NCBI RefSeq assembly: GCF_902652985.1
Contig: NC_047024.1
Coordinates: 4,588,001 to 4,652,000 of the forward strand
Source of the DNA: Pecten maximus
Taxonomy: Eukaryota
Length of the DNA stretch: 64,000 bases
Reading direction: 5' to 3'
Shown: one piece after another, positions 31,701-64,000 of the stretch
Layout: each line of letters starts with the position of its first letter
Position numbering within the stretch: the stretch's first letter is position 1
Program-made: the position numbers and the translations under genes
The notes under the pieces: generated by a model
Told to the model about the DNA's origin: nothing
Seen by the model: only the letters and a program-made list of their open reading frames with translations
The model's database searches: none

Positions 31701-34091
31701 ATGTATTTCTTAGGATCATGAAAGATTATTGAAGAAAATGAATATGTAATAATTACTTGCTTCTTATTTTGTTATCCTTTCTACAAATATATTAGGAACT
31801 ACTAACTTATAATAACTTTATTTACAGAAGTCAGGATAAAGGATTTCATACAGAAAGGGCAATAACCCATGTATTTGAGAAGGCAGAGGAAGTGCCCTGT
31901 TCCAGATAAAGTACCAATCAAGCATCATTTGTCTCTCAAAGTCAACAGGTAGATCATTTCACTTAACATAAATTTATTATTCAATGGCGAAAAGATGTTT
32001 AGTAATCAAGTACCAGTAAAATAATAAACCTTTCTGGCTGAATAAGATAAATTACCTGTACAAAATGTATGTATAATTTTATTGTTACTAATTTTATAAA
32101 TTAGAAAGCCAATATGACTCCCACACCCTAAATCACCTGAATGTGCTGAGTTGGGGTAGCGCTAGGATGGATGGGGAGGTAAAGATGTCAACTAAAACAA
32201 ATAAGATGGCCATTTTTGACCGACATGGGTGATTCTGTTTTGCAGGAGGCTGCATGAGGAGCCTGGTAACCCCGTGTTTGAGGTGAGAAAACAACTGGAG
32301 GAACGGCTTGTTACTGGTGATGGCTTCGTCAGACTGGTGAATGTTGGAACTCCTATCTTACAGCAACCATTGGAGAGGTCTGGAAAGCCGCTGAAGGCAT
32401 TAGCACGATGTACAGACACTTCATCAGTGAAGGCATTAGCACAGAGTACAGACACTTCATCAGCGAAGGCATTAGCACAGAGTACAGACACTTCATCAGT
32501 GAAGTCATTAGCACAGAGTACAGACACTTCATCAGTGAAGTCATTAGCACAACGTACAGACACTTTCTCAGTGAAGTCATTAGCACAGAGTACAGAAACT
32601 TCATCAGTGAAGTCATTAGCACAGAGTACAGAAACTTCATCAGTGAAGTCATTAGCACAGCACACCGACACTCTTCATATATCAGATTCAGATGTAGACA
32701 CTGGTACAGAGATTAATTCCAATGTAATGCTGGGCACACCTTCACACAACAAAACATTTATATACGATGACAACACAGGTGTAACACAGAATGACACACC
32801 TGAATGCCTCGACATTTCTGTACCCGACAAAAAATCTACAAGTGGTGATGCACTTCTATGCGACACATATTCAAATCAGTGTTACTATCTGGGTACCAGG
32901 AATCAACTGTCATGTTATGGTCCCATAGCTGAGGGTGCTAACTCAAGTACAAGGTCAAAGGTTACAGAGGGTGCTAACTCAAATACAAGGTCAAAGGTTA
33001 CAGAGGGTGCTAACTCAAGTACAAGGTCAGACATTACAGAAGGAGCTAACTCAAATACAAGGTCAAAGGTTACAGAGGGTGCTGACTCAGATACAAGGTC
33101 AAACGTTACAGAGGAAGCTAACTCAAGTACAAGGTCAAACCTTGGAGAGGATAGAGATGGCTATGCAGAGACAAGGAAAGAGCCGACAGAAACAGATATC
33201 CGTACAGAAGCCACACAATGGGATACAGATATCTCACCGGATGATGAACATCTGCGAATGTCAATGCTCGAACATTTAGATGACTTGATACATCATACAA
33301 ATAGTAATCCAAAACAAATTGCCATAGCAACAGGAGATGTGTATAGACGTTGCCAGGTCAGTCCCAACATACAGCCATGGGGAGTAGAAATGATATGTGT
33401 TTTACCAGAAATTTCTTTAGAGGAAGATAAACAAGAAGAAAATATGGAGTGTGCTAAACAACTGTGTACCAAAGTAAACTCAGCACTTGGATCATGTGGG
33501 AAAATTCAGCTAGAACAAACAGGAAAACTGAATTTATTATCTACAGGTGTATGTTCACTTGGCACAATAAATATGTGTATCCATGGTGATGATGGATGTA
33601 AAACCATTGGCTCAGTAATGGTGTATTGTCCTGAAGATAAACCACGACGACCTATTCTGGTGTTTGATGTTGTCAAACTGTCTATGTGTATGTATCAGAT
33701 TCCACACGAGACTCTGCTCTGGTCTACTGACAGAAGAGTCACTCAACAGTTCAGAAGGAAAGATGGTGACTGGCCAATGTTTAAAACTGTTAGTTTATAC
33801 CCAATTTCTTTTACTTTTGACATGAGTTTCTGGGAGAAACCCGAGGGAGCCTTCGACACCCTGCTATACAACGACATCATAAGGAGTGTTGCGGGTGAGG
33901 AGATATCTTCAGTAGAATTGTTAGAAATGTACAAAGACATACAGACAGACAGGCCTACTCGATGTCGTAGTCGGTGTTACAGACTTATCTTCCTGTCACA
34001 TGATCGAGTATTGTCTTATAACACCTGCTGGCAGTTACAGAGCAGGATACGCCTGGAGGTGGCCCAAATTATGGGCGTGGAGTTAAGATAG
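28756..34091 (+). CDS. FDXACB1: Ferredoxin-fold anticodon-binding domain-containing protein 1 (BMT5-like/DUF2431 methyltransferase-like N-terminus, FDX-ACB C-terminus); exons 28756-28942, 30318-30474, 31161-31364, 31828-31948, 32246-34091; apparent +1 frameshift in exon 4
   Basis: Motifs [45 protein letters not shown]...[24 protein letters not shown], and C-terminal [14 protein letters not shown]...SRCYRLIF...GVELR*. Confidence 0.9.
30632..31110 (+). mobile_element. Truncated HINE-like interspersed repeat in FDXACB1 intron 2
   Basis: Starts AACAAGAGGCCC; internal degenerate tandem units of about 170 bp (TTTTGGGCC...CCCCAGGGG...TTTATATAAAT...ATGATGTTTC). End approximate. Confidence 0.55.
32393..32671 (+). 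repeat. Coding 36-bp tandem repeat ([12 protein letters not shown] x about 7.7) in FDXACB1 exon 5
   Basis: Visible in DNA and in ORF 32229..34091. Confidence 0.95.
32931..33143 (+). repeat. Coding 36-bp tandem repeat ([12 protein letters not shown] x about 6) in FDXACB1 exon 5
   Basis: Visible in DNA and in ORF 32229..34091. Confidence 0.95.
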
Positions 34092-43400: not shown

Positions 43401-45101
43401 ACCCCCCCCCCCCCCCCCCCCCTCCCCTCCCCAGTGTGACCAGTAGGAGACAATTACCATTTAGTTACATCATACAGACATAGTAACGACTTGGTATGTT
43501 GAAATTACTATTATCTATCATAAAAATCATCACAATAATGACTTGCCTGGTATCTTTACAATAATGATACATCTTTATAATGATATATTATGTCAAAAAC
43601 ATTGTTGTCAAATCTGTTATAGAAACTTATCTAAGAACTAAAGTCTATTTGTAAAAGTAACTTAAAAATGTAGTTTTTCACAATAATGACTTATCTATGA
43701 CCTACACATGTAGAGTGTACGGTCACTTACTATAAAGAGGCTGCTGGTCTTTCGATTTGTCATTTGACATTATCATGCATATGCGATGGTCATAAGTTTC
43801 TAGCTTACTAGCTAAGTTAGTGTTCCTTTTAGCCTTGTTGAAAGATACACAACGGCATAGAGAAAAAGAGGCCGTTTGTTTGAGCCCCACCATTGACAAT
43901 TTGACGGGGTATTTTTTATTACTCCTTCCTATTACACTTGTTTGTTTTATTAGCTCAATAGAGTATTGTTTTGAAATGTATCAACGTCAAGTAACAACTT
44001 ACCCATGCTAATAAAATAATGGCTTAGCCATTAGCTATTGCAAATGTTCAGGGATTGACACTAACAGTAGCCCGGCAGCCCTGGGCTGCCTGGAATTTGG
44101 TCGGGCTCCTAGAATGTCCAGACCAGCAGCCCTGTAGGCTGCCAACATTTCCAATCAAATTTATAATGTCCAGCTAAAGTTTTCTTCATTTACTTCAAAA
44201 ATATTATTTTCAAAACTTTTTTCATGATTGAACCGATGCGTAAGATCTAATATTTTTATACTCAGAATGAACTAGAATGCAGGAAACTGCATCTAGAATA
44301 TTCATTTTTTCCGCTGTGTGGGGTAAGGGCTGGAGGCCTAGGGACATTATGCCCCCTAGGCCTATAAATCCCCCAAGAGGGACATCACCTTTGGCAGCCT
44401 CATTCCAAAACCTGACAGCCCGGCGGTCTGTTAAGGCACAGGGGCATGTCTAATTTTATATAAAAAAATAGCCAGAAATACCTATATATATATTGACATA
44501 TATAGGTATTTCTGCCTATTTTTTTTAATATAAAACTAGACATGTCCCTGTGGTCAAGGTGATTAAATGAATTAAAGTCAATATCATAACAATTTCATGT
44601 AACTCCTTTAGGCTTAGCTTCTGTTATATTACTCCCATTTCAATTGTATTTTTCTGATTTAATTAGGTTAAGAAATTATAATATACATTTTGTAATCTCA
44701 CCTCCATTTAATTTGAACTTATTTATATCATCCTGTGGTTTTTCGCCTCCAATAAACAATATAGAAGCGACGCCATCATGATTTTCAAGAAAATGGTCAA
44801 TGACCTCTTTGATTTGGAATGCTAATTCTCTTGTAGGAGTTAGAATGATAGAAAATATCTCGTGTTTCTTCAGTTTCCCTGTTTCTCTCACTTGCTTGTC
44901 AAGCTTTTCAAGTATAGGAATAAGGAAAGCTAAAGTTTTGCCACTTCCAGTCACTGCCTCAGCTGCCACGTCCTTGTTGCCAATAAATAATGGTATGCAT
45001 GCCACTTGAACAGGAGTTGCTTTCACAAATTTCAACTTATCTAGTGTTTTAAAAGTAGAATCACAAAGTGTGACTGGCAACTCTTCCCACGTGGGTTCCA
45101 T
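37410..45101 (-). CDS. DDX55: ATP-dependent DEAD-box RNA helicase DDX55 (Spb4 orthologue), about 585 aa; exons 45101-44702, 42240-41753, 41283-40709, 40102-39868, 37469-37410
   Basis: Q motif ATPVQ, AVTGSGKTLAF, PTRELA, ATPGR, DEAD, QRRTGLFSAT, TDVMARGVDIP, QYDPP, HRCGRTARIG, DUF4217-like C-terminal extension (YVKHECSMIFRVKDLDFGRLATGFGL..PKMPEL) and Lys-rich tail; phases consistent. Confidence 0.95.
37702..38584. mobile_element. MITE-like element with 21-bp perfect terminal or subterminal inverted repeats in DDX55 intron 4
   Basis: TTTTTTGTTATGCGTGGATAC (37702-37722) is the reverse complement of 38564-38584; further inverted GCTATAAAA/TTTTATAGC lies inside; no ORF. Confidence 0.65.
39164..39324. 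mobile_element. Small hAT-like MITE remnant
   Basis: Termini CAGGGATTATTTT / AAAATGATCCCTG (12 of 13 inverted match); target-site duplication not clean. Confidence 0.4.
43145..43456 (+). mobile_element. Degraded HINE-like element related to the 19963 copy
   Basis: 5' AACAAGCATACTGG...TTGCTTAAGCAATACATGTCCC resembles 19963-20004; the 3' end TATAG...CCAGTAGGAGACAA resembles 20551-20583. Confidence 0.5.
44049..44400 (+). mobile_element. Partial copy of the CAGGG-terminated non-autonomous DNA transposon also found at 51196-52560 (opposite orientation, lacking the nested insert)
   Basis: CAGGGATTGACACTAACAGTAGCCCGGCAGCC...AATGTCCAGACCAGCAGCCCTG...TATAATGTCCAGCTAAA matches the reverse complement of 52560-52456 joined to 51402-51345. 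Confidence 0.75.
44437..44552. mobile_element. 116-bp near-perfect palindrome (foldback MITE-like)
   Basis: Arms CACAGGGGCATGTCTAATTTTATAT...AGAAATACCTATATAT / ATATATAGGTATTTCT...ATATAAAACTAGACATGTCCCTGTG; flanks GTTAAGG / GTCAAGG may be a 7-bp target duplication. Confidence 0.7.
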
Positions 45102-45339
45102 GTTTGTTATTGCTAACGGATCGGTAAATATTACGGATTGTAATATTGTTATGGAAATAATATTGATAAAGTAAGTATTCATTAATATTTATGAATCAAT
45201 TTATACGGAAGACATAAAAATAACCTGTACATGAATTATTGTCACCAAATCATTAATATTTAGCATTTCAATATATTTTTTTATTGATTTTTGTTATCAA
45301 ATATATTCTGTAAGATTATTTCAATTTTGAGACTACATT

Positions 45340-45465
45340 TTTATTACCTCCAAAATGAAGAGTTCGGCTTTGTTTTGCGGCTTCAGCTGCATCGCTGCTG
45401 ATTATTTAGCCTAACAATCCATGCAGTGAAAGGCATTTGGAAATTGTGAAGAAGTTCTGCGTAAG
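45340..45465. promoter_or_regulatory. Probable bidirectional promoter / leader exons of DDX55 (-) and SETDB1 (+)
   Basis: Divergent genes; minus-strand donor GGAG|GTAATA near 45346 and plus-strand donor TGC|GTAAGT near 45460 flank a short CpG-containing segment. Confidence 0.45.
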
Positions 45466-46825
45466 TTAAATAACTGCGTTTTAACTATCAGATAATTATT
45501 AGCGAAAACTTATCGTTTCTTCACTTGCATGTTTGCACCGACAAGGCACGCTTTGTTGAGAATTTCAGACTATTGACTAATTGAGTTGTGATGTTCACAT
45601 TTGGTGTTCAAACTTAAGACAATAAATCGTGTTTTCAGTGTCAAACCACAAATTTTGTCACAGAAAAAAAGCCTTACATACATATTTTGAAAGATTAATG
45701 TGTAGAGCTTTTGATGTAATCCAGTGTATTTGAAGAATTTTAAAATCGTAAGTAAGTCGAAAATCACCAGAGTAGTTTCCCTTCGACTGTTTGATCACCA
45801 TTGGATAATTTTGGACATTTTACATTCTAGGCCTATTTCATATGACTTTGAAAATAAATCTGATACTGATCCCTCAGATAAAAATTTGCCTGTGGGAATC
45901 GTAAATGATACATGATTTTCATTATATATCTATTTTATGTTATTTAAATACTGAAGTTTTTTAGAGGGACAATTTGAATTCTATTGATATCATCTTATAG
46001 TTACTCACGAAAATTGACATCTTAATTTTTTTTTCCAAAATAAGATAAAAGTCCCCTGCTATATCAGATTATTTAAGAGAAGCTCTGAATGTAATGATTG
46101 GTTATGTAAAATGTCAGGGCCAGAGGAAACTTTGGCTATTAGCTATCAAGATAAAGATATTTTAGACATACCTTATTAATGTTACACTTTATACATGTGT
46201 ACTATATAATACAGTTTCTTAATTATGAACTATGTATGCTGTGTAGATCAGTACATTAACTACATTTATTTTTCAGCTGTAAATTATTGTCAAACCCAGA
46301 AAAAACAACAGTAGAAATAAGCAACAATAGATAGGTGACAGATATACTAAATGTACAACTACATTTATAGACACGCAGTCAAACAAATTACAATGTACAT
46401 CGAGACTTATCAGCAAGTGGTACACAGTGTAAAACAATAACTCTTTTACCCTAATATGTTTATATTATGTAATTATAAATTGCATTGAAATATAAAAAAG
46501 TGAGATTTTCATCATGCAACAAAATTGATCATGTAATCATATACTAAAATAATTTATCTTCATTGATAAATGGAAATATAAGTGATGATTATTTCGGATG
46601 GAATCACCCAGAGATTAAAAGCTAGAGCACATTACCTCGAGTGCTAGTAGATGGACATTAAGGTGTTGGTTTAGTAGATAGATATTAAGGTGTTGGTTTA
46701 ATGGCATTGCTAGGTATTTTTGTATGAATATGAAAGTACTTCTACCTTGTTTAAATGGTATATAATGTAGTATTACTGTCTATGCATTGTACAGGAGTTT
46801 CTTTTATCACCATGCTGTAAGTGAA

Positions 46826-49800
46826 ATGGTTGCCCGTAAAAAGTCCAAACGGAAGTCATCATGGTTTACTTCTGGAAGTCAACAGTCTAAAAAGACAATG
46901 GAGGAGGAGAAAGAAAGTATAGCAAAAACGACAGAAGATGACGCTTGTTGTATCATCGATGACAGTGATGTCAAATTGGAGGGGGATGGTGAGTCCAAAG
47001 GACATCTGTGCTTGCACCATCTGCTTTCTATGTCATTTCCTGTCAGTGTTCAGTACCCAGACATTCATCGGAATTAGAGATTGAAGTTCTTTGTTTTTTT
47101 GCTAAGAAATATCTATATGCTGTCACTTTTGATTTCAGAGCTTAATTTCTATATTCTTGAATGGTAGTTTTAAAAAAAGGAATCTCTGAAATTACAGTTC
47201 AAGAGTGACAGGCTTTCGGGCATTTAGAAGACTATTGAGATATCATGTATGAAATCTCCCTGGGTCCTGAGACTAATTATGAAGACTGATCTGGCTGTAC
47301 CTCCTGCTGCTAGTCAAGATCCGTATGTGCGAATATTCTGTGCTTTTATTAATCTATATTGCTAGTTGCTGCCTGGTATTCTGTGAACTATGTTATTCTG
47401 TCTGCACTAAATCCTATATGTTGTAATTTGTATATAGGTATATGTTATTTATATACAGTAATACATTTTAGCTTCTATCCTATGTATATAAATTAAACAG
47501 TTTTTATGTTAAAAAAATTACACAAACAATAATGGTGCTTATAGTAATTATAGGTTCTGTATTGTTTGTAAAGTTGTGAAAACGAGATCATGGTGTTGCA
47601 TTTCAGAGGCATCAACTGTGGCCAGTTTATTGTAATAGATGTACATTATTAAGGTATATACCTAGTCAGTATTGATCCCAAATTATTGTCACCCGCGTGT
47701 TTGTCCAGTGTTTTTGGAATCGGTGACAATAAAGGCAACAATTAGTTCTACTTCCTTTATTTTATCCTTCGTTTACATCATCATTGTGCAAGCTTTATTC
47801 TTTCTGTTCTCTTCTCTGTCTCTACACCTTCTTCTCTCTCTCTCTCTCTCAATCTGACTCTCTTTTTTCAGTCTCGTCTATCCATCTAATATATACGGTA
47901 CATACAGTCTAAAGACAAAGTGTATGAAAGTATATATGAAAATTCCATAGATAATTTGTCTACAGAAAATTGAAATCCCATAGTCCAAGTCAATTTACCA
48001 TAGACCCATTTTGTAAACATATTGCCGAAAGTAGCATAACTGCGCCACACAAACACTTGCATCATCCAGTTCATACTCACTCAAATGTTTGAAGCAAATA
48101 ACATGCTGTTCTTGGTAAAAACACCTCGATTGTTAGCTCTGATTTCATATGATCATTTGTCAGAAAAATTTGGGAATGTTGTTTACATGAAATGTAATGT
48201 ATGTCAGGACTCAAACATTTCATAGCCAATCGGGACAACACTTAGAAATTTTACGTAGACCTACCAGGTTATCTATAGCCTCTGGACTATCGGACCACAT
48301 TTACTTTTGAACAATGAAGACACTACTTCTGCATTACTAAATCCTCTTTTTTTAATTGGTTAACTCTACCCTTAGGAGGCAGAACTAACCTATCTCGGCT
48401 GAAATCCTTTGATGACCTTCACATAGACATTACCACACTCTTCATTCTCTTTCACTTCCTACCACCGTGCGTGCGTGGCCTGGTCATCTCATTAAAAGCT
48501 CAATCTCTTTTAAAATATTTTTTTAAGTTGCCTTCTTCTTACTTTTCTGATCTGACACACTGTCCCTTTCCCACCTGTCATACTATCAAAATCTGTACAA
48601 ATCTATGTTGAATTGTTTATTATACAAGAATGTCTGAATGTACAAAAAATGAATAATACAGACAGATTTTATGTTGAAGACATCTCTATAGCTTTTATGA
48701 AGCATTAAAAAGAAAAAAAAAACTATTTATGCTATTAACAAACATTAGGACCCTGTTTAATGTGAAAAGGACCCCATTTATATTATACACTGAGCGCTAA
48801 CCCTGACATGCTAGATATTGTGTATCACCTGTAAAATGTACCACTTTTGTATGTCTGTCTTACAAGTATATATGATGAAGCACTGCATATTTATTACAGT
48901 ACCTATATATATCATTATATGTATCATGATAATTGACTTTTGTTTTTAACCAGATGATTTGGTCCCATTTGCACTTTGCATGATTTTTACATTACAATGA
49001 TTTTGCTTTCAGCATGCTAGAACTTAGGTATTTATTTCCGAGGATAAGAACCCCCTATCTGACTTTGATACAGGCAATCCCTATATTGACCTTGAACAAC
49101 AAAAACAAAAGACTTCATGCATAAAAAACAATATGGTACACAACTTTTGCTTATAATCTGTTGTATCTATGGATTAAAAGCTTTCAGCCAGACAATATAC
49201 ATATTAATGTAGAAGACTACAGTGTAAAATATTGTGACAAGTTGAGACTTTGTGAGCATCAACATGATGTCGGGTCCGACATTAACACACAGTGGTACGG
49301 CCGGTGGAGGTGAAGCCATGGCAAAAACATTCTGTGCAGTGCAAGGATGTGCAAATTCCTGTGGATTGATGAGGAAGAAACGAGAAGGATTTTGTGATGT
49401 GCACAAAGGCCAGCCACGTGACATTTGTCCATGTCCTATCCCAGAACCACTCTTCCCCTTTCCTATAGATGAAAACCAGCGTAGGATCTGGATGCAGAAA
49501 GTACACTTAGCTGAGGAGTTGTTAACCTCCAGACTCCGGGTAAGTGACAAGAAAATCAAAACTGCTTTATCACTAAAGTGGAAAAAAAGTGTTAACACTT
49601 TCTAAAATAGTGTGCAATTTTGTCACTGAGAGAAAATATATAAAAATACATTTTTCTTCATAGAAGTGTCCACTTATCATGCTGTAACAAGTATTGTTCT
49701 CTGAATTTTGTCGTGGATATGTTACTTCCCAATTTAATTAATTCATTAATCCCACTACAAGCTGATACGTGTTGGAGCAATAGATTAAGTTTTGTCTCTA

Positions 49801-52800
49801 AATGTTTTCCATGAATTTTTCGAAACCTTGTGTTGAAAATGTTATCACAATGCACTATTCTTTTTATTTGATTGTTAAAATGTAATGTGAGTGTTACAAT
49901 AAGGCATCTTCTGTCAATCTCAGTGTTTGACTAATTCGTTTAAAACATGGTATGCTTTATAATATCAAAATGTTGCTATATTTTCCTGAAAACTAATTTG
50001 ACATTTCTTTGTAAAGTAAGAAGTGGTCTTTGTTTATTTTTGTTCAGTTTTCTTTCAATGCAACATCCAAAGCAATAAAATTCCTTTATCAAACTCTATA
50101 ATGTGATGCTTTCATTGATGTATTCAGATTTTTCCAGACAGTCATTTATATATGAGTTTTTTACTGAATCATCTGGTTAGGTTTGCTCTGTGCATTTCCG
50201 GGATGGCAAGCCAACAGATGAGAACCCCCATCCTGAATTAAAGCTGGACGCCGATGAAAATTCACATTCAAAACTCGGTGCAAATGGTAAGCATCCAAAT
50301 TTGTGTCTGGATTTTAAGAAGCACACCAGAATCAGTTTCACATTATTATTTTTTATATAAAAAGTTCTCATTAAGCTATTAAGATATTATGCATTTGTAT
50401 GTTTGAGATGAAATATTATACAGTTGTATATTTGAGATGAAATATACTTTGAGGTGAAAAATTATACAGTTGTATATTTGAGATGAAATATTATACAGTT
50501 CTATAATTGAGGTGAAATACTATACAGTTGTATGTTTGAGATGAAATATTATACAGTTCTATGTACAATGGAAGCACTCTTGATTCATTATAACCTTTGC
50601 TTTTTTTTGTATTCAAGATCCCCAGTTCAATAAACTTCACCAGAAGAATCTTCAGCTGTTTTGTCGTTTATGTGGAGACAACGAAGGAGTATCTATGAAA
50701 GTCTGCAGAGCATATACAAAATATAGATTTCAAGTGGACATCTTTTCATCAATGGCTATTGATGTGAACCAGGATTCCTGTTTTGTCCATCCTCGAAACA
50801 TTTGTTATGTCTGTCGAGCAAAATTAAGTGCGTGGAAGGCCGCTGTACAAAAAGGCAAACCTGCTGATATACAAATACAGCCAGCCAAATTTTTACCCCA
50901 TGACGAGTCCAGTAAATGTCTCGTGTGTTTGAACTACTCATTCAGAACCGGCAGACCTCCACAAAAGGCTCCTGCTACCAATTCAAGCAACTCATGTTTA
51001 GGTATGGACATAATTCAGAGTTGCTTCCCTTATCTCATCAGAGTTATTGCCCTTGATGGTCATACCATTTAGAGATATGCTTCCTTTATCTCATCAGAGT
51101 TATCACCATGATTGCCATACCATTTAGATATATGGTTCCCTTATCTCATCAGAGTAATCGCCCTTGATTGCCATACCATTTAGATATATGGTTCACAGGG
51201 GTTGACACTAACTTAGTTGCCTTAGGTTATGAAATGAGGAAGCCTGGGCTGCCAATGGTGAGACCCCTCCAAGGGGATTTTGGGGAAGTTCCCTAAAATG
51301 CAGTTTCCTGCTGTCTAGTTCTTACACCTACAGGTTTTATATAAACAGTTTTGAAAATAAAATTATTGAAGTAAACGAGGACAATTTTAGCTGGACATTA
51401 TACAGTGCAACTTCCGAAAACCGAACCTTCTAAAAACCGAACACCTCTGAATACCGAACGAATTGTTATTGTACGGAATCGGTCATTCTTTATTATGGTA
51501 TGTAAAAACTTCCAAATACCGATCCCTCTGAATTCCGAACACCGGACCGATTTTGTCTCCGGTTCCTGATAAAGTATACCAAAAATTACTTCTGAAAACC
51601 GGCCTTACCTGAGCAATTATGACACGAGGTCAGGCTAGTCAACCGTGAAACAACAACTGTGACGGGTATTGTGTGAAGCCAAATTGTGTCTCGATCGGGA
51701 CTTACGTTTACATGTAGGTGATTTGTACAGGTAATCCAATAAATACCCTGAGGGGCGTTATGATTGTAGTGTATAATCAACACGGTAATTAATACTAATT
51801 ATGAAACAATGCCACACTTCATCGAAGCGCAGCAGATTCCATGTAAATCTTCGCAATACAAGTAGAGCTAGGAGCCTGAGTTTCGCATTCTAATCTAAAT
51901 GAGGCCCAATAAGGGGTGTTCTTGCAGGGTCATAACTATACACACTGAAATGATGCCAGTGTCCGATGTTTATTTTTTAAGACAATACCGATATCGGGAA
52001 TACCACCGGTATCAAGTGATCAATTGTAATTCATATTGAAGCAAGACATCTTCACACACTTTCATATCATTCGATTTCCGTTTTTTGTAAAATCATTAAA
52101 TATCCCGTATTAGGCCCCACCACATGGCGAAGCAACAGAATGCAGGTCGATCGTGAAGTGCAGTAAATGTATAAAACTATATAAAACTACAGTTAGTCAT
52201 TTTAATTTCTTATATAATCTGTAATATATGCATTGATTTACTTTCATGATATTCATATTCTTCAGACAAACCAAATTATCTATGTGCGTATAGTAGGCCT
52301 AGTGTCGGTTTGTAATCGGGTACAATCTAACATCGTCCGACCAATTATATTCGGAACTCGACCGGTTATTTTGACCAACTTCTCCAAACCGAACCCTCTG
52401 TAAACCGAACAAATATCAATGTCCCATGCATGTTCGGTTTATAGAGGTTCCACTGTACATTTGGCTGAAAATGTTGGTAGCCCACAGGGCTGCTGGTCTG
52501 GACATTCTGGCAGCCCGACCAGATTCCAGGCTGCCGGGCTACTGTTAGTGTCGATCCCTGGGTTCCTTTATCTCATCAGAGTTATCACCCTTGATGGCCA
52601 TACCATTTAGATATATGCTTCCTTTATCTCATCAGAGTTATTGCCCTTGATGGCCATACCATTTAGATATATGCTTCCTTTATCTCATCAGAGTTATTGC
52701 CCTTGATGGCCATACCATTTAGATATATGCTTCCCTTATCCCATCAGAGTTATCACCATGATTGTCATACCATTTAGATATATGCTTCCTTTATCCCATC

Positions 52801-55800
52801 AGAGTTATCACCCTTGATGGTCATACCATTTAGATATATGCTTCCATTATCTCATCAGAGTTATCACCCTTGACGGCCATACCATTTAGATATATGCTTC
52901 CTTTATCCCATCAGAGCTATCGCCCTTGATGGCCAAAACATTTAGATATATGCTTCCTTTATCCCATCAGAGCTATCGCCCTTGATGGCGAAAACATTTA
53001 GATAATATCGTAATACTAAACATTAGATCCTACGTATACCAAAATGGATAATTTTGGGGATTTATGAAAATGATATGATGGATGGTTCCCAGACTGTCAA
53101 ACAGGAGTTTTATCCTCAAAATTGTCATTTTAAAAGTTTTTTTTAGATGTTCTGAATTTTTGTTTTATGTTGCCATTATCAATCAAGCATGCAACTGATT
53201 ATCTGTAGATATTTTTCTGGTTTTATGTAAGCATGCCTTTGTTGTTGTGTTTGTAGACTCCATATATTACACTTCCTTTATTATCGGCTTGTTACTAACC
53301 TTTCTCCACTTCATATATCAATATGTAGCAATGATTTAGTATAAACTAAATATTAATATATATATCATCTTTATAATAACACGTTTCATTGACAACATTT
53401 TCCATGAATGAGATAAAATTGAACATGCTCTGTAGTAATTCCAACATTTCAGCATCCGTACCAATATTGATTTGAGGGTTAAAGGTTGTACACATGTACC
53501 TAGATATTGAAACTATCCAAAAGGCTCATTTCAGTTACAAGAAAGTTATTTCACTTGCCAGTAAAAAGTCAATTTGCAACATTATAATCACAAAATAATG
53601 ATGCACCTTTCAAAGTAGGGTCAGACGTTTGCAATACAAGTTTATACAAGGCTGAAGCAACTATTGATAATTAGTTTTTGGGTCAGTTAGGTCTTTGATG
53701 TCATTAACATTTGACATAAATACAAGCTTCATGATTATGCAAATCAGAAATGCCCAAATTATCATCAGAAATTTACTGAAAGTATATCATGTTTTTGATA
53801 CGTTGCCAACTAATTCTTCTTTTTGATGATTATCAGTAATATGGTGATAATCACAGAAAGAGTAGTTCTAATTTCAGGCATGCTTTTTTTTCAGAACCTG
53901 AAGAGACCATTGAGGTTTGATCATATACAGAAAACATACCGTCTGTTGATTAAAATATAATTACGATTATATATAGTAAGACAGTTAAAAAAATTCAAAA
54001 TCATATACTAATGTGCCTGATTCTATTTCTCACTTCAGATAAACCGTCGACAACCATGGATGTTTGTAAGGAAAAAGATGATGAGAACAAATTGTATTTG
54101 TTGGACTTTAAGTTGGACATGGATGATATCATCTCATCCACCCTGAAGGAATTCTGTGAGCCAAATGATGAGGATACATTGGCCTTTCACTCGGATCTCT
54201 CAAAGTTTTCTCAACAACTTCGATCTATTGACCGTATGTTTTAATTCAAGATATATATTGATGTAATTGTCTGAATAATAATTAATTAAGGTGTCGATAC
54301 ATGAATGTTTTACTATTGTTTTTGACAGACTTGACTTTGTGTTTATGTAGGAAGCTACAAGATCTTGTGGTTTCTGAATTTTTATTTTGAGATTGCTATG
54401 ACAGGACATGTTTCATTTTGCTACTATGTTGAATTTTAAGATTAATTAAAGACAACATTGGGAAAAAATAATGTTAACTAGATTTCATCAAGATCAAAAC
54501 ACAGGATTTCCATCCAGAAAATGGTCGTAGATATGTTATCGTTCTGACGGTCGTTTTTCTACGTTTTCTCTTCGTTTTCTCTTTGCTTCTCTTCTCTAAC
54601 TGGTCATTTGACTTTGGAAACTTGACAGTGACCTTCAACTACGAAGTCAAGGTCAACGATTTGCTTGCCTGAAGTCTGCATTGGTTAGAGTATTGGAAGA
54701 AAAGCATTTAAAGTGCATTTTGATGATATTTTTTTGATTCTGAACGGTTTCGACAGTGCTGTTTTTGCGTTATTTTTTAGGACTCGTCCTTGAAATGTTG
54801 CAAACATCTTCAAAGGATTATTTTCTTCGCAATCATTGATTGCACTTGTATTATCAGTTTCTGAACTACCACTTATATTCTGATCATTCCTGGTAACTTT
54901 CCTTTGACACTGAAAGCTTGTTTTGCTCGGTTTAACCATGCTGTATGTTTTTTGGATTTGTTTTATGCAGGCAAGACGAAGGAGGTGCGTAAGATCTACA
55001 CAGAATGTTCTGAGAAGCTTCGTATCTATCGTGAGGAGCTGGAGGAGGCTGACCGCGAGGAGGAGTAAGTACAAACTCCAGAATGGATTTCAGGAATCAG
55101 CATTCAGAAGTTAATCATTGGTGAAATTTAGATAGTAGTAGCATTGTCTTTACATATTCTTTTGAAAAAATGTCATATTTTTTGTAAGTTAGTGACTGCC
55201 AGGAATGCTGTGAAGAATTAAAACATGTTTTGGTCAGTTTGAAATTCATGATGATTGCTTTGATTGCTGTTGCCTATGATCTGATCATTTCTGTTTTGTT
55301 ATTTCCTGAATATTGATTCCCTGTTTATTGAAATGATTTACAGCGAATGAAAACTAAAAACTTTTATGATGTAGTTATCTCACATAGCCTGAAAATAGGT
55401 GTGATGTAAAAACATGAATTTGTGCCTGATATCTATCAACCCCTACCATTAAAAACACTACAGCAACAGATAAAAACAGATGGATTAAAAATCTCAATGG
55501 AGCTCGTCCTATTTCAGTCATTCCCCACCTTCTCATTAAGTTACCAGTAAGACAGTACAACAAGTATTTTTTAATAGGTTAAAAGAAGCAGCTGCTGAGA
55601 TTGATGCAAAGGAGGCTGCGGAAGCAAACGCCAAGGTTGATGATGAGAGTGACGAGGATGATGTACAGTTTGTGGCTGCAACCTATGACCCATCTGTTAT
55701 GGAGAAGAGACAAGTTTTAGCTCACCAAAACAAAAACATTGTATCAGCGTTATCAGCACCAGCAGTAGGGAAAATGGAACCACTGGCACTGCCGCCAGGG

Positions 55801-58800
55801 TAAGTGAAACAAGACTTTATCACCAATTAGTAAACATACGTCACATTATCACCAATTAGTAAACATGCGTCACATTATCACCAATTAGTAAACATACGTC
55901 ACATTATCACCAATTAGTAAACATGTCTCAAAAAACAATAAATAGACAGTCAAATATGACGTTTGGCCAGAGGAAAAATTGTAATGAACCCTGTATTTCT
56001 GTACTGTAGTGATGTGTTGGTGAAGTTGTTGTTGTAATGAACCCTGTATTTCTGTACGGTAACGCTGTATTGGTGAGGTTGTTATGGTAATGAACCCTGT
56101 ATTTCTGTATTGTTGAGGTTGTTATTGTAATGAACCCTGTATTTCTGTATTGGTGAGGTTGTTATGGTAATGAACCCTGTATTTCTGTATTGGTGAGGTT
56201 GTTATGGTAATGAACCCTGTATTTCTGTATTGTTGAGGTTGTTATTGTAATGAACCCTGTATTTCTGTACTGTAGTGCTGTATTGGTGAGGTTGTTATGG
56301 TAATGAACCCTGTATTTCTGTATTGGTGAGGTTGTTATGGTAATGAACCCTGTATTTCTGTACTGTAGTGATGTATTGGTGAGGTTGTTATGATAATGAA
56401 ACCTGTATTTCTGTACTGTAGTGCTGTATTGGTGGGTTGTTAGGGTAATGAACCCTGTATTTCTGTACTGTAGTGATGTGTTGGTGAGGTTGTTATGGTA
56501 ATGAACCCTGTATTTCTGTACGGTAACACTGTATTGGTGAGGTTGTTATGGTAATGAACCCTGTATTTCTGTACTGTAGTGATGTGTTGATGAGGTTGTC
56601 ATGGTAATGAACCCTTTATTTCTATATTGTAGCGCTGTATTGGTGAGATTGCCCCCTAACAGTCAGCAGGTCCAGCGCAATTCTAGTCCCTCCCTACAGT
56701 CACTGAGGAATGTCCTACAAGCCACCATCAACAAGCAAATACCTGCTGTGGCACAGTTACAGCCGACAACCACTACTGTGGTAAGGGATATTTATTACCC
56801 GATACCAGTAATATATCTATGATTTTTACATCTGGATTCCAAAATCTGTACATTGTGATTATAATTGTACTACATAAACAGTAATATCCCCAATGTTGAT
56901 TTTACAAAAGATTCTCAGAAGGTTTGAAATTGTATCCAATATATCTAGCAAGCAATTATTAATTTGGAATCTTGACAAGTGTTACTTTCATTTTTGTGAT
57001 GATACACAGCACAATAATTATTGATGTTTATACTGTTTGTAGGGGGCCCCAGCAAGCCAGGTGGTAAAGTCGAACAGTCTTCAAAATCAACAACGTATGG
57101 AAGCCCTGTATAGAGCAGATGTAGAGTAAGTGTGAAGGAACAGCATTGTCCATCAATATTTATTGATGTCGAATATATTAATAAAAAATGCTGATGATTT
57201 AATCAGTTTCTATCTTTCTGAAAGTCTCCCCTGAAGGCAGAATCAGCAAGTTGATTCTGTCAGTGGGGAATCTTTCAGTGGGGAATCTTTCGGTGGGGAA
57301 TCTTTCAGTGGGGAATCTTTCAGCAAAGTAGGGAGAAGTGAAGGATTTGCTGTTAAAAATCAAATATCATATGTTACGGGCTATTCCTATAAATGACATG
57401 GTAAATCTGTCTAACAATTAAGCTTTGTATTTCACAGGATCATAGACATTAGTAGTAAAGTACTCGGGAAGAAATTTAATGATATCTGGTACAAAGGAAC
57501 AGTATCTGACATCCAGAATAAAGACAAAACCATTTCAGAGGTACAGTATCTAACCAATAAAGCAAATGAAAAAGTTTAAAACTTATCATACTGACAAAGC
57601 AGGACAAATGAGATATATGTTTATCATATAACTGGTGATGTGTTCTACCATGTCAACTGACTGTCATAGATATCATAAAACCTATGTAATAACACTATTG
57701 TGACATGATAAAAATAATAATTTTTGGTGTCTCAATTAATTTATGACGTTGTTTGTCTTTGTAGAGAAAAACATTCCGTCTGAGTCGAAATTCATCTCTC
57801 TTATATATAAAAAAAAAGTGTTTTCCTTGATAATTATATTTTCATAAATATAAGATATGTAATAAACAGAATCGTACGATCACGGCTATGTAATACAGAA
57901 GTCATGTTGCTTGTGAAATAATTTCACACGCCACACGCTCATGGCATATCAAATTATTAACTTATTTGATAAATTCCATATTATATTGACTCTCGCGTAA
58001 CATCCTCTGTATAATTACTTGTTCATTTTCAGAGAAAATATAGCATAAAGTTTGATGGAAAGGGAAAGAAAGTGCTGAGCCCAAAACATGTTGCCTTCAA
58101 AGACTCCTTAGTACGACAGATTTATGTGGGCACTCGAGTCATAGGTAAGTAGTACGACAGATGTATGTTGGCACTCGAGTTATAGGTAGGTAGTACGACA
58201 GATGTATGTTGGCACTCGAGTCATAGGTAGGTAGTACGACAGATGTATGTTGGCACTCGAGTTATAGGTAAGTAGTACGACAGATGTATGTTGGCACTCA
58301 AATTAGAGGTAAGTAGTCCAACAGAGTTATGTTGGCACTCAAGTTATAGGTAAGTAGTACGACAGATGTATGTTGGCACTCGAGTTATAGGTAAGTAGTA
58401 TGACAGATGTATGTTGGCACTCAAATTAGAGGTAAGTAGTCCAACAGATGTATGTTGGCACTCGAGTTATAGGTAAGTAGTACGACAGATGTATGTTGGC
58501 ACTCGAGTTATAGGTAAGTAGTACGACAGATGTATGTTGGCACTCGAGTTATAGGTAAGTAGTACGACAGATGTATGTTGGCACTCAAGTTAGAGGTAAG
58601 TAGTACGACAGATGTATGTTGGCACTCGAGTTATAGGTAAGTAGTACGACAGATGTATGTTGGCACTCGAGTTATAGGTAAGTAGTACGACAGATGTATG
58701 TTGGCACTCGAGTTATAGGTAAGTAGTACGACAGATGTATGTTGGCACTCGAGTTATAGGTAAGTAGCACGCCAGATTTATGTGGGCACTTGAGTCATAG

Positions 58801-60131
58801 GTAAGTAGCATATAGCAAGTTTTAGATAACAAGGTAAAATACTGACATTGAGATTGATCAGGGTCAAAGTTCAGACTTGGTTTAGGACGATCAGAATAAC
58901 CGGGTGTAATGATACGTTCTGCTGGTAGATGGTTAGAAGATTTGTCCTAACCACTGTTATTGGTGTTAAATTATTGTTTCTACCTTGTGATTAACTTGAC
59001 ACTCTTATTAAATGCCAATCTTCCATTCAGATAGATAATTCAACATTTATTTGAATTTTGGGGCTAATTTTTCAATATTGTTTGATATTTAGTTGGATCT
59101 TCATGATAGTGTAATGTTCACCACACAACAAAATAAACCTGAATTATATATCCTTTCAGCATTGTATCGAGATGAGGATTCTACGTCATCGTATTATGCT
59201 GGTATAGTAGCGGAGACTCCCAACGGCAGGAATCAACAGAGGTTTGTTTCTCATTATTTTATACAGTTTTCACAGTTATTTAATCTTGGTATTCACTATC
59301 ATTAGGGTAGCAAATCTCATCATTCAAAGTTACTGTTACAGAAATAAATCTGATTTAAAATAGATCTTGAATTCCACTTTGATACTCTACATTACAGATA
59401 AACATGCATATATATTTGCCAACTTTTTTTTAATTTCCAGGGAGGAAGGGTCAACAAATATTGTAAATAAAATGTTTTTCATTTGAGAATAAAATTTGGT
59501 CCAGTATTTCACATGAGTGTAACTTGTTATTCTGATCTCCTTTTTAGATATTTGATTTTCTTTGATGATGGCTATGCCCAATACTCCCTGGCAGTGGATA
59601 TCAACAAAGTTTTCTGGCAGAGTAAGTTATATCAGGAGATTCAGAAACCTTTTTATATAATTCTAATGTTGATGAAATAAATATTTCTCAGAGAAACATT
59701 CAGAAATTGCCAAAAAAGTCTGTATTACATATGCATAATTACACAATATCATGTTTATAAGTTACATTTTAGAAATTTCATCAATTCTCAATATTCATAA
59801 TGATCTTCGATGGACAATTTTAGGTTTTAGAATTTTCATGTTGTTCAGGCATTTGTTAATTTTACTGAAGTGAATTTGTAATACAAGTCTTTGGAAAATA
59901 TCTCCTCTGTGCAGCGAAACTTGTAAGATAATTGATAAAACCTGTTTAATATCAAAGTAGGAATGAATTTTAGGTAAGAAATGATCTTTAATGTGTTCTA
60001 CCATTTACAAAGATATTGACAGCAAATCAGTAGAGACAATTACTGGTGTTTTCTAGGTGCTAATGTGTGGGAGGATATCCATCCCGACTCGCAGGAATTC
60101 ATCAAGGAATACCTCAAGCAATATCCCTGAG
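46826..60131 (+). CDS. SETDB1: Histone H3K9 methyltransferase SETDB1, 5' part through the Tudor domains (continues beyond window); exons 46826-46988 (tentative first), 54039-54233, 54971-55064, 55578-55799, 56633-56780, 57043-57125, 57438-57540, 58033-58144, 59160-59241, 59548-59621, 60057-60131
   Basis: Triple-Tudor sequence VLGKKFNDIWYKGTV, KYSIKFDGKGKKVLSPKHVA, YVGTRVIALY, YAGIVAETPN...RYLIFFDDGYAQY, WEDIHPDSQEFIKEYLKQYP matches the SETDB1/eggless family; phases are consistent except one extra C at 60125-60127. Confidence 0.9.
49318..50286 (+). CDS. THAP (C2CH) zinc-finger domain on two exons, 49318-49539 and 50181-50286; probable alternative first coding exons of SETDB1
   Basis: MAKTFCAVQGCAN...LFPFPIDENQRRIWMQKV...RLR|VCSVHFRDGKPTDENPHPELKL contains the THAP C-x4-C, P, W, C-x2-H-F and P residues; GCCATGG start context; donors CGG|GTAAGT and ATG|GTAAGC. 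Confidence 0.85.
50400..50562. repeat. About 29-bp minisatellite (TTTGAGATGAAATATTATACAGTTGTATA), about 5 copies
   Basis: Direct periodicity. Confidence 0.8.
50618..51001 (+). CDS. RAG1 N-terminal non-core-like zinc-binding domain on one symmetric (phase 1-1) 384-nt exon
   Basis: HQKNLQLFCRLCG...IFSSMAIDVNQDSCFVHPRNICYVC...FLPHDESSKCLVC...GRP parallels vertebrate RAG1 HQANLRHLCRICG...[25 protein letters not shown]...WHPHTPSCDIC (recalled sequence); pyrimidine-rich acceptor and TAG|GTATGG donor; no stops. Confidence 0.8.
51196..52560 (-). mobile_element. Non-autonomous DNA transposon with 17-bp TIRs (CAGGGRTYGACACTAAC; hAT-like termini) carrying a nested element
   Basis: CAGGGGTTGACACTAAC ... 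GTTAGTGTCGATCCCTG; flanks GGTTCA / GGTTCC; second copy at 44049. Confidence 0.8.
51403..52455. mobile_element. Tc1/mariner (pogo/Tigger-like) non-autonomous element with TA target-site duplication
   Basis: TA|CAGTGCAACTTCCGAAAACCGAAC ... GTTCGGTTTATAGAGGTTCCACTG|TA; repeated ACCGAAC subterminal motifs; the empty site is visible in the 44049 copy. Confidence 0.85.
55817..55925. repeat. 29-bp tandem repeat (TTATCACCAATTAGTAAACATACGTCACA), about 4 copies
   Basis: Direct periodicity just inside the intron. Confidence 0.85.
55981..56650 (+). repeat. 53/37-bp minisatellite derived from the SETDB1 acceptor at 56632/56633
   Basis: Unit GTAATGAACCCTGTATTTCTGTACTGTAG|TGCTGTATTGGTGAGGTTG matches the real TTTCTATATTGTAG|CGCTGTATTGGTGAGATTG. 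Confidence 0.92.
57260..57323. repeat. 15-bp tandem repeat (TCAGTGGGGAATCTT) x4
   Basis: Direct periodicity. Confidence 0.85.
58145..58800 (+). repeat. 41-bp minisatellite derived from the SETDB1 donor at 58144/58145; 16 GT...AG units
   Basis: Unit GTAAGTAGTACGACAGATGTATGTTGGCACTCGAGTTATAG; 656 nt = 16 x 41; final GTAAGT at 58801. Confidence 0.95.
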
Positions 60132-60144
60132 GTAAGGGCCTTCT

Positions 60145-63100
60145 CAAACATTCTTACTACCTATATCAGGTGGTAGGTGGTTCAAACATTCTTACTACCT
60201 ACATCAGGTGGTAGGTGGTTCAAACATTCTTACTACCTACATCAGATGGTAGGTGGTTCATACATTCTTACTACCTACATCAGGTGGTCAGTGGTTCAAA
60301 CAGTCCTACTACCTACATCAGGTGGTAGGTGGTTCAAACAGTCTTACTACCTACATCAGATGGTAGGTGGTTCAAACGTTCTTACTACCTACATCAGATG
60401 GTAGGTGGTTCAAACATTCTTACTACCTACATCAGACAGTAGGTGGTTCAAACATTCTTACTACCTACATCAGACGGTAGGTGGTTCAAACTGTCTTACT
60501 ACCTACATCAGACGGTAGGTGGTTCAAACATGTTTACTACCTACATCAGGTGGTAGGTGGTTCAAACATTCTTACTACCTACATCAGGTGGTAGGTGGTT
60601 CAAACATTCTTACTACTTACATCAGATGGTAGGTGGTTCAAACATTCTTACTACCTACATCAGGTGGTAGGTGGTTCAAACATGTTTACTAGCTACATCA
60701 GACGGTAGGTGGTTCAAACATTCTTACTACCTACATCAGGTGGTAGGTGGTTCAAACATTCTTACTACCTACATCAGATGGTAGGTGGTTCAAATATTCT
60801 TACTACCTACATCAGATGGTAGGTGGTTCAAACATTGTTACTACCTACATCAGATGGTAGGCGGTTCAAACATTCTTACTACCTACATCAGACGGTAGGT
60901 GGTTCAAACATGTTTACTACCTACAACAGGTGGTCGGCGGTTCAAACATTCTTACCACTACATCAGGTGGTCGGCGGTTCAAACGTTGTTACTAGCTACA
61001 TCAGATGGTAGGCGGTTCAAACATTCTTACTACCTACATCAGATGGTAGGTTGTTCAAACATTCTTACTACCTACATCAGGTGGTAGGTGGTTCAAACAT
61101 TCTTACTACCTACATCAGGTGGTAGGTGGTTCAAACATTTTTACCACTACATCAGATGGTAGGTTGTTCAAACATTCTTACTACCTACATCAGATGGTAG
61201 GCGGTTCTAACAGTCTTACTACCTACATCAGGTGGTAGGTGGTTCAAACAGTCTTACTACCTACATCAGATGGTAGGTGGTTCAAACATTCTTACTACCT
61301 ACATCAGACAGTAGGTGGTTCAAACATTCTTACTACCTACATCAGGTGGTAGGTGGTTCAAACATTCTTACTACCTACATCAGGTGGTAGGTGGTTCAAA
61401 CATTCTTACTACCTACATCAGGTGGTAGGTGGTTCAAACGTTGTTACTACCTACATCAGACGGTAGGTGGTTCAAACATTCTTACTACCTACATCAGACG
61501 GTAGGTGGTTCAAACTTTCTTACTACCTACATCAGGTGGTAGGTGGTTCAAACATTCTTACTACCTACATCAGAAGGTAGGTGGTTCAAACATTCTTACT
61601 ACCTACATCAGATGATAGGTGGTTCAAACATTCTTACTACCTACATCAGGTGGTAGGTGGTTCAAACGTTGTTACTACCTACATCAGACGGTAGGTGGTT
61701 CAAACATTCTTACTACCTACATCAGACGGTAGGTGGTTCAAACTTTCTTACTACCTACATCAGGTGGTAGGTGGTTCAAACATTCTTACTACCTACATCA
61801 GAAGGTAGGTGGTTCAAACATTCTTACTACCTACATCAGATGATAGGTGGTTCAAACATTCTTACTACCTACATCAGGTGGTAGGTGGTTCAAACGTTGT
61901 TACTAGCTACATCAGATGGTAGGTGGTTCATACATTTTTACTACCTACATCAGATGGTAGGTGGTTCAAACAGTCTTACTACCTACATCAGGTGGTAGGT
62001 GGTTCAAACATTCTTACTACCTACATCAGACGGTAGGTGGTTCAAACATTCTGACTACCTACATCAGACGGTAGGTGGTTCAAACATTCTTACTACCTAC
62101 ATCAGATGGTAGGTGGTTCAAACAGTCTTACTACCTACATCAGACGGTAGGTGGTTCAAACAGTCTTACTACCTACATCAGGTGGTAGGTGGTTCAAACA
62201 TTCTTACTACCTACATCAGGTGGTCAGTGGTTCAAACATTCTTACTACTTACATCAGATAGTAGGTGGTTCAAACATTGTTACTAGCTACATCAGGTGGT
62301 AGGTGGTTCAAACAGTCTTACTACCTACATCAGACGGTAGGTGGTTCAAACAGTCTTACTACCTACATCAGACGGTAGGTGGTTCAAACATTCTTACTAC
62401 CTACATCAGGTGGTCAGTGGTTCAAACATTCTTACTACCTACATCAGACGGTAGGTGGTTCAAACATTGTTACTACCTACATCAGATGGTAGGTGGTTCA
62501 AACATTCTTACTACCTACATCAGGTGGTAGGTGGTTCAAACTTTCTTACTACCTACATCAGACGGTAGGTGGTTCAAACATTCTGACTACCTACATCAGA
62601 CGGTAGGTGGTTCAAACATTCTTACTACCTACATCAGATGGTAGGTGGTTCAAACATTGTTACTACCTACATCAGATGGTAGGTGGTTCAAACATTCTTA
62701 CTACCTACATCAGGTGGTAGGTGGTTCAAACATTCTTACTACCTACATCAGACGGTAGGTGGTTCAAACATTCTTACTACCTACATCAGATGGTAGGTGG
62801 TTCAAACATTCTTACTACCTACATCAGATGGTAGGTGGTTCAAACATTCTTACTACCTACATCAGACGGTAGGTGGTTCAAACAGTCTTACTACCTACAT
62901 CAGATGGTAGGTGGTTCAAACATTCTTACTACCTACATCAGGTGGTAGGTGGTTCAAACAGTCTTACTACCTACATCAGGTGGTAGGTGGTTCAAACAGT
63001 CTTACTACCTACATCAGGTGGTAGGTGGTTCAAACATTCTTACTACCTACATCAGATGGTAGGTGGTTCAAACAGTCTTACTACCTACATCAGATGGTAG

Positions 63101-64000
63101 GTGGTTCAAACATTCTTACTACCTACATCAGATGGTAGGTGGTTCAAACATTCTTACTACCTACATCAGGTGGTAGGTGGTTCAGACATTCTTAATACCT
63201 ACATCAGATAGTAGCTGGTTCAAACAGTCTTACTACCTACATCAGATGGTAGGTGGTTCAAACATTCTTACTACCTACATCAGACGGTAGGTGGTTCTAA
63301 CAGTCTTACTACCTACATCAGGTGGTAGGTGGTTCAAACATTCTTACTACCTACATCAGGTGGTAGGTGGTTCAAACATTCTTACTACCTACATCAGACG
63401 GTAGGTGGTTCTAACAGTCTTACTACCTACATCAGGTGGTAGGTGGTTCAAACATTCTGACTACCTACATCAGATGGTAGGTGGTTCAAACATTTTTACT
63501 ACCTACATCAGGTGGTAGGTGGTTCAAACATTCTTACTACCTACATCAGACGGTAGCTGGTTCAAACAGTCTTACTACCTACATCAGGTGGTAGGTGGTT
63601 CTAACAGTCTTACTACCTACATCAGGTGGTAGGTGGTTCAAACATTCTTACTACCTACATCAGGTGGTATGTGGTTCAAACATTCTTACTACCTACATCA
63701 GATGATAGGTGATTCAAACATTCTTACTACCTACATCACACGGGAGGTTGTTCAAACATTGTTACTACCTACATCAGATGGTAGGTAGTTCTAACATTCT
63801 TACTACCTACATCAGATGGTAGGTGGTTCAAACGTTCTTACTACCTACATCAGGTGGTAGGTGGTTCAAACGTTCTTACTACCTACATCAGGTGGTAGGT
63901 GGTTCAAACATTCTTACTACCTACATCAGACGGTAGGTTGTTCAAATATTCTTACTACCTACATCAGGTGGTAGGTGGTTCAAACATTGTTACTACCTAC
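60145..64000 (+). repeat. 38-bp minisatellite (TCAAACATTCTTACTACCTACATCAGRTGGTAGGTGGT), about 100 copies, running off the window end
   Basis: Direct periodicity starting about 13 nt after the donor at 60131/60132; internal inverted motif CCTAC/GTAGG. Confidence 0.95.

Follow-up and report, generated by a model that had tools for sequence, protein, structure and literature searches.

Several systems are known in which a zinc-finger protein steers histone H3 lysine 9 (H3K9) methylation to transposons or promoters, such as the KRAB-ZFP/TRIM28/SETDB1 pathway and the pairing of LIN-15B, a THAP protein, with MET-2 in C. elegans. Transposase-derived parts have also been joined to host proteins by splicing. 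SETMAR (Metnase) of anthropoid primates is a single-copy host gene in which a SET methyltransferase is spliced to the DNA-binding part of a transposase, and in CSB-PGBD3, the KRAB-transposase fusions and THAP7, the DNA-binding exons of a transposon that landed in or near an intron were joined to host exons. THAP7 is reported to have arisen by fusion with a P-like transposase (PMC10680173). The known host-transposase fusions mostly pair the DNA-binding domain of a transposase with an adaptor, for example KRAB, which leads through TRIM28 to SETDB1. Here, we analysed a stretch of 64,000 nt of the scallop Pecten maximus (NC_047024.1, positions 4,588,001 to 4,652,000 of the forward strand), hereafter called the window, which contains no N. 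At this locus, which resembles SETMAR and the spliced fusions in the respects just named, three upstream exons encoding a probable THAP finger and a RAG1-type N-terminal zinc module, the NZD, are joined to the exons of the H3K9 methyltransferase gene SETDB1. The existence of an in-frame THAP / RAG1-N-terminal / SETDB1 fusion mRNA is established by contigs from public sequencing runs. The exons concerned are as follows (positions within the window).

49013..49539, strand +, THAP exon 1, with a leader at 49013-49317 and coding sequence from ATG 49318 (contigs, Pfam THAP)
50181..50286, strand +, THAP exon 2, with the C-x2-H ligands, then F, and the proline motif NPHPEL
50618..51001, strand +, exon 3, NZD (RAG1-like), with eight zinc ligands and a GRP motif (junctions in three runs)
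54039..54233, strand +, first SETDB1 coding exon common to all forms (contigs run from 51001 into it and on to 54971)
54971..55066, strand +, next SETDB1 exon (the loose end of an X2 contig equals 54972-55001 exactly)

The reading frame was followed through the splice sites. The coding part of exon 1 (49318-49539) begins with an ATG in the strong context GCCATGG, comprises 74 codons, and ends in phase 0 at the donor CGG/GTAAGT. Exon 2 is preceded by AG and holds 35 codons plus a G in front of the donor ATG/GTAAGC. Exon 3, with a pyrimidine-rich tract and AG in front of it, completes the codon GAT, continues for 127 codons, and leaves G as the last base at the donor TAG/GTATGG. At the acceptor before 54039 (TTCAG), this G joins AT to form GAT (Asp) in the SETDB1 phase. 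The three added exons place 238 intact codons ahead of the first SETDB1 residues. With 0.06 stops per codon in the window, the probability that a random start is followed by 127 open codons is about 4e-4. An earlier note, made from the sequence alone, had proposed three stop-free exons with canonical splice sites whose phases 0, 1, and 1 chain into 54039, and all of this was recovered as proposed; the added length was given there as about 237 residues.

Twenty public runs from eight studies contain part of the stretch. The contigs of four runs from four studies (X1 to X4) were aligned to positions 48400-54300. The junctions 49539>50181, 50286>50618, and 51001>54039, which the earlier note had singled out for checking, were all found with GT..AG ends in the contigs of X1, X2, and X3, which belong to three studies. 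Record 8 of X2 (1784 nt) covers 49315-49538, 50180-50285, 50617-50999, and 54037-54234 and then extends for 873 nt more; its first loose letters past 54234 match 54972-55001 exactly, with AG at 54969-54970. The junction 51001>54039 is also crossed by X1 record 2 and X3 record 14, and in the fourth run X4 record 18 terminates exactly at the 51001 donor. Moreover, in each of X1, X2, and X3 it is the contig arriving from 51001 that covers 54039-54233. No contig entering 54039 from another upstream exon was seen in these three runs, from whose contigs rare forms may have been dropped.

If the contigs were chimeric, or derived from genomic contamination or a retrocopy, the joined form would be an artefact. 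Such an origin is conceivable, given that the RNA nature of the runs is a guess and that de Bruijn assembly can yield chimeric contigs. However, the same three in-frame junctions with exact GT..AG sites recur in three studies, and no joined copy of any exon was found in the Pecten maximus assembly (918,306,378 bases, 3,983 contigs). Since each exon has one genomic place, the joined form cannot derive from DNA, and we regard an artefact as hardly credible. Direct reading of the contigs revealed three variants in the coding exons (50238, 50898, and 54193), all of which are synonymous; both of those lying within the added exons are thus silent, and the shorter 305-nt leader has three variants. 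One X3 contig was 2 nt short at 54126, inside exon 54039-54233, a gap that stems either from a frameshifting variant or from an error in the contig.

To place the exons in the genome, the whole assembly was searched for further copies. No second DNA copy of the 2.1 kb exon region was found genome-wide, apart from a short intron minisatellite, and no inverted repeats were found within 47000-54100. The dispersed copies flanked by terminal inverted repeats (TIRs) that had been named as a sign against a domesticated gene were accordingly not found, either among the genome copies or in 47000-54100. The nearest paralogs of the added exons are 27-37% identical, and each exon is single copy. From this distance to the paralogs and the lack of a second DNA copy, the capture is considered old. 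The domains are transposase-derived, spliced in frame, immobile, single copy, and free of TIRs, as is the case for host-transposase fusions.

The intron between 51001 and 54039 contains a dispersed repeat of about 1.06 kb at 51400-52460, flanked by 51022-51194 and 52507-53092. It had 944 candidate genomic places, and many of the 40 that were scored were 97-99% identical. Given these identities, the repeat is young and probably non-autonomous, and a 56-bp minisatellite appears to have been its insertion site. This dispersed repeat explains why the RNA contigs in this intron are very deep. A 29-bp tandem repeat occupies 50355-50578, in the intron splitting the THAP domain, and related arrays were found on contig C9.

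The four zinc ligands of the THAP signature (C-x2-4-C, a spacer, and C-x2-H) are all present, with C6 and C11 supplied by exon 1 and the remaining C2 and H5 by exon 2. Over the first half of the Pfam THAP profile (PF05485), exon 1 by itself scored 16.2 bits (E 0.019), short of the cut-off of 23.9; exon 2 by itself was too short to score and gave no Pfam THAP match. Exon 1 also contains an extra Cys/His insert together with FPFP and W motifs. The spacer from C to C is 64 residues, compared with 35-53 in classical THAP fingers, and this greater length is due to the Cys/His-rich insert. The same insert is common to the THAP domains of two Harbinger transposases of the genome (loci L013 and L014), which pass the Pfam cut-off. 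Both loci encode THAP, HTH_Tnp_4, and DDE_Tnp_4 and are therefore PIF/Harbinger-type transposases.

L013:364-1797 and L014:103-1785, strand -, PIF/Harbinger transposases with an N-terminal THAP (domain scan)

The nearest genome paralogs of exon 1 are 28-37% identical to it, and L013 and L014 are the two of them whose domains were scanned. Exon 1 aligned with residues 35-99 of L013 (36% identity, E 5e-11), and exon 2 aligned with residues 117-138 of the same protein (59% identity over 22 residues, E 2e-7). Because both align to L013 in order, exons 1 and 2 are colinear with one uninterrupted THAP domain. L013 and L014, with their shared Cys/His insert, are candidates for the source family and for the targets of the SETDB1 THAP. 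A transposon origin of the finger, proposed earlier with reference to P-element-type and some other DNA transposons, is borne out by these transposase relatives as far as the origin goes, but the closest ones belong to the Harbinger type and not to the P type. Exon 3 also matched L013 weakly, at residues 184-235; the cysteines are missing there, and the match was set aside as chance.

The third exon was characterized at the levels of profile, ligand pattern, and predicted fold. Exon 3 alone matched Pfam RAG1_imp_bd with E 2e-4 and 21.5 bits, against a cut-off of 23.3. A HMMER scan of 1.84 billion cluster representatives yielded 95 homologs of exon 3, with the best at 32-47% identity. Eight zinc ligands were found in the exon peptide (H7, C15, C18, C62, C65, H94, C100, and C103), and these sit at conserved columns of an alignment of 35 homologs. 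Together they account for a pair of interdigitated zinc sites, with four Cys in ZFa and two His plus two Cys in ZFb. A profile of exon 3 plus 34 homologs matched the RAG1 fragment PDB 21WB with E 1.2e-18, and the exon 3 family profile matched residues 100-251 of full-length RAG1 with E 1.2e-14; exon 3 alone gave a weak match to 21WB (E 0.16). The AlphaFold2 (AF2) model of exon 3 has four helices and a pLDDT of 86.3. A Foldseek search of the PDB with this model returned nothing significant, its top entries being ZAD domains with E 0.3, and 21WB was absent from the fold-search results. The first half of the model matched ZAD structures with Z of 5.3, 5.2, and 4.3, in agreement with the NZD preprint on ZFa. 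Identity with ZAD (PF07776), a homodimerising domain with a single zinc, was rejected, as exon 3 has two zinc sites and not one, zf-AD, with E 0.0026, is below the cut-off, and the RAG1 NZD is monomeric. Judged from its sequence features, exon 3 is a complete NZD without a RING or a recombinase core.

According to a preprint of January 2026 (bioRxiv 10.64898/2026.01.24.700457), 21WB is the NZD, with two interdigitated zinc modules, a monomeric state, an undefined role, and a ZAD-like ZFa. The homology region corresponds to about RAG1 89-223. In the same preprint, the mouse ZFb ligands are H102, H206, C210, and C213, a pattern that exon 3 matches, and outside RAG1 and RAG1L the domain is described as consistently retained only in Chapaev transposases. 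Since the RAG1 NZD is monomeric and its role is undefined, the RAG1-like domain is not an established DNA binder. The identification of a RAG1 N-terminal module, including its homology and its transposase relatives, therefore stands, whereas its use as a DNA-binding module can no longer be taken for granted.

The homologs of exon 3 include a true RAG1-like recombinase (P0045), amphioxus and pearl-oyster proteins, and many small proteins, which are mostly molluscan according to the protein atlas. An NZD-type domain was also observed at the N-terminus of three P-element-like transposases from sea cucumbers, which have a TNP-like RNase H and a GTP-binding domain (P0005, P0009, and P0020, the last being XP_071855332.1 of Apostichopus japonicus). 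In a Pinctada imbricata model (P0050, KAK3091136.1), indoleamine 2,3-dioxygenase, NZD, and RING occur together, and this model represents either a fusion or merged genes. A metagenome scan yielded no relative.

The host gene was then delineated. Its Tudor exons lie in the window, and the remaining domains were matched downstream of the window.

57415..59677, strand +, SETDB1 Tudor exons in the window (DUF5604 and Tudor_5 matches)

MBD, pre-SET, split SET, and post-SET exons were found at three downstream loci (L005, L017, and L018), where Tudor_4 was matched with E 4e-20 and MBD and Pre-SET were also matched. The SET pieces correspond to profile positions 1-32, 65-90, and 87-105, in exons about 20 kb apart; their colinear order fits a bifurcated SET followed by the post-SET Cys motif, and they match the SET/post-SET regions of H3K9 methyltransferases in the PDB. 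The Tudor_4 exon and exon 54039-54233 have one genomic place each. SETDB1 thus appears, from these matches, to be intact and single copy, with triple Tudor, MBD, pre-SET, bifurcated SET, and post-SET. Because the host gene is single copy, the THAP and NZD exons are carried by the sole SETDB1 gene of the scallop. Long tandem arrays in the SETDB1 introns (60177-63788 in the window, and loci L005, L006, and L017) are open in several frames; such arrays, for example with a unit of about 38 codons, inflate lists of open reading frames and do not look like genes.

Based on these results, we infer that the fusion mRNA is translated. It is fairly probable that THAP-NZD-SETDB1 exists as a protein whose own DNA-binding finger guides H3K9 methylation. 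The case for a working protein rests on an old capture that has kept a 238-codon frame open and in phase with SETDB1, on the retention of all twelve zinc ligands, on the THAP-like placement of the start, and on the synonymous nature of all three coding variants. If this is correct, the exons would stem from the 5' coding parts of DNA transposons, by an ancient capture, and would since have been kept under selection. Translation would start at ATG 49318 and would add about 238 residues before the triple Tudor, MBD, pre-SET, split SET, and post-SET. By binding a specific DNA motif, the THAP finger would bring the H3K9 methyltransferase to that site with no need for an adaptor. The likely targets would be elements with the same THAP subtype in their transposase (PIF/Harbinger-like) or host promoters bearing the motif, and the NZD would probably scaffold contacts with DNA or proteins.

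At its 5' end, THAP exon 1 reaches further than the earlier note had it. The matches of X1 record 1 and X3 record 11 begin at 49012/49013, just past TTTCAG, and these contigs carry 319 and 301 extra nt, respectively, lying outside 48400-49011. Since the contigs bring at least 300 nt of upstream transcript, the start of exon 1 is an acceptor at 49013 and not the start of a first exon. The sole contig crossing this acceptor unspliced is X2 record 6. An exon further upstream may be the donor.

46826..46988, strand +, putative upstream exon (54-codon open frame, donor ATG/GTGAGT)

A G stands before the 49013 junction, and 46826-46988 likewise ends in G, in keeping with the 1-nt ambiguity at the 49012/49013 acceptor, but such agreement is a one-in-four coincidence. 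If 46826-46988 were spliced to 49013, the frame would read two codons and stop at 49019-49021, and for that transcript the exon would not provide the alternative N-terminus that the earlier note had proposed. With a few residues between ATG 49318 and the first Cys, the start has the position usual for THAP proteins. A G>A variant at 49273 was observed in two runs and would change Gly to Ser if the start were ATG 49264; this variant therefore fits 49318, and not 49264, as the real start.

Several observations weigh against a translated and functional fusion. The 305-nt leader of exon 1 (49013-49317) contains five upstream ATGs, and with this ATG-rich leader and at least 300 nt of transcript ahead of it, initiation at 49318 should be lowered. 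The strong ATG at 46826 opens a 57-codon upstream frame if it is joined to 49013. Another ATG, at 54056 within exon 54039-54233, lies in the strong context ACCATGG and could yield plain SETDB1. Scored one exon at a time, neither THAP nor NZD reaches its curated Pfam threshold. Furthermore, no ortholog of the fusion was found: no SETDB1 or THAP parts were present among the 95 NZD-bearing representatives, and no public protein with exon 3 was found in the word-based searches, in which the presence of the annotated scallop proteins is uncertain. Finally, contigs drop rare forms, and they show presence but neither abundance nor absence.

These features suggest a rival explanation, namely that the transcript is real but no fusion protein is made. 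The exons would then be exonised transposon relics in a long 5' leader and would only tune SETDB1 output, with ribosomes either starting at 46826, where the stop at 49019-49021 would expose the RNA to decay, or scanning to 54056. The acceptor at 49013, the upstream ATGs, the strong contexts of 46826 and 54056, and the failure to find a database protein with exon 3 all fit this explanation. However, an old single-copy relic is not expected to have kept a 238-codon frame open together with twelve zinc ligands, nor to be in phase with SETDB1 and to carry only synonymous variants in its added exons (two of two). Moreover, contigs from 51001 seemingly form the main route into 54039, which would be odd for a by-product targeted to decay. 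A role as leader alone is thus considered unlikely.

Alternatively, and as the earlier note had raised against its own reading, a separate THAP-NZD gene may be nested in SETDB1 intron 1 and end past 51001, with splicing to 54039 a minor by-product of read-through. In favour of this, molluscs commonly have small NZD-only proteins, and reading on past 51001 into the intron adds about 24 codons before a stop. However, the contigs leaving 51001 reach 54039 in three studies, and the listed pieces that end at exon 3 halt at the donor without running on into the intron. In addition, the exons are entered via the 49013 acceptor from an upstream transcript and not from a promoter of their own. A nested gene is therefore quite improbable, and a THAP-NZD-SETDB1 protein remains the preferred reading.

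Proteins of the same architecture were sought elsewhere. In the literature, no description of a THAP-SETDB1 or NZD-SETDB1 protein was found, and the NZD preprint makes no mention of SETDB1. A word-based protein search with exon 3 alone, covering 70-222 residues, returned nothing. When exon 3 was combined with the amphioxus protein P0001 (710-2257 residues, with a saturated candidate list) or with the RAG1-like P0045 (526-1673 residues, all 7648 candidates scored), only relatives of the carrier itself were returned; in these searches with a carrier, it is uncertain whether the words of the second alignment row were used. The architecture had been put forward as previously undescribed, and no paper or database protein with it came to light.

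A stronger form of the preferred reading is that THAP-NZD-SETDB1 is the main SETDB1 of the scallop, a sequence-specific H3K9 methyltransferase in one polypeptide. Its DNA-binding domain, taken from PIF/Harbinger-type or other THAP-bearing transposons, would recognise the ends of these elements or motifs within them, and its NZD would be the first to work outside a transposase or recombinase. We put this forward only tentatively and regard it as rather doubtful.

Other features of the window are recorded here. The first coding exon of a DEAD-box helicase lies at 44676-45182 on strand -, head to head with the 5' region of SETDB1, and the two genes probably share a bidirectional promoter at about 45200-46700. 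A 620-codon open frame with internal Ser/Thr-rich repeats occupies 32229-34091 on strand +. A search of Rfam over 46000-55500 returned nothing.

The overall picture drawn beforehand therefore holds in part, as the fusion mRNA and the transposase relatives of both modules were recovered, but the THAP type and the NZD as a DNA binder were not. How SETDB1 is targeted in animals without KRAB zinc-finger proteins is an open question, which a THAP finger of its own would answer directly. If true, the scallop protein would be an invertebrate, adaptor-free counterpart of the vertebrate KRAB-ZFP/TRIM28/SETDB1 pathway. It is also a clear invertebrate case of transposase capture with the silencing enzyme itself as the partner. 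The occurrence of the NZD in a chromatin enzyme and on P-element-like transposases bears on the way in which RAG1 gained its N-terminus.

Compared with the described systems, the scallop fusion differs in several respects. The KRAB-ZFP/TRIM28/SETDB1 and LIN-15B/MET-2 systems act in trans via adaptors, whereas in the scallop the reader and the writer would be one polypeptide. In SETMAR, a small SET protein is followed at its C-terminus by an entire mariner transposase; in contrast, the scallop fusion has an N-terminal THAP and NZD without a catalytic core on SETDB1, the main H3K9 silencing enzyme, and the transposon families differ. PRDM9 is similar in that a histone methyltransferase has its own sequence-specific zinc-finger DNA-binding module, but it has a PR/SET domain writing H3K4/K36, a C2H2 array, and another origin and role. 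The scallop NZD shares the ligand pattern H, CxxC, CxxC, H, CxxC with the NZD of RAG1/RAG1L and the Chapa domain of Chapaev, yet it is found in a chromatin enzyme and without a RING or recombinase core. In none of SETMAR, the known spliced fusions, KRAB-ZFP/TRIM28/SETDB1, and LIN-15B/MET-2 is SETDB1 itself the fusion partner or a THAP combined with an NZD; the scallop gene, a host-transposase fusion like the first two, stacks two transposase modules that are unrelated to each other.

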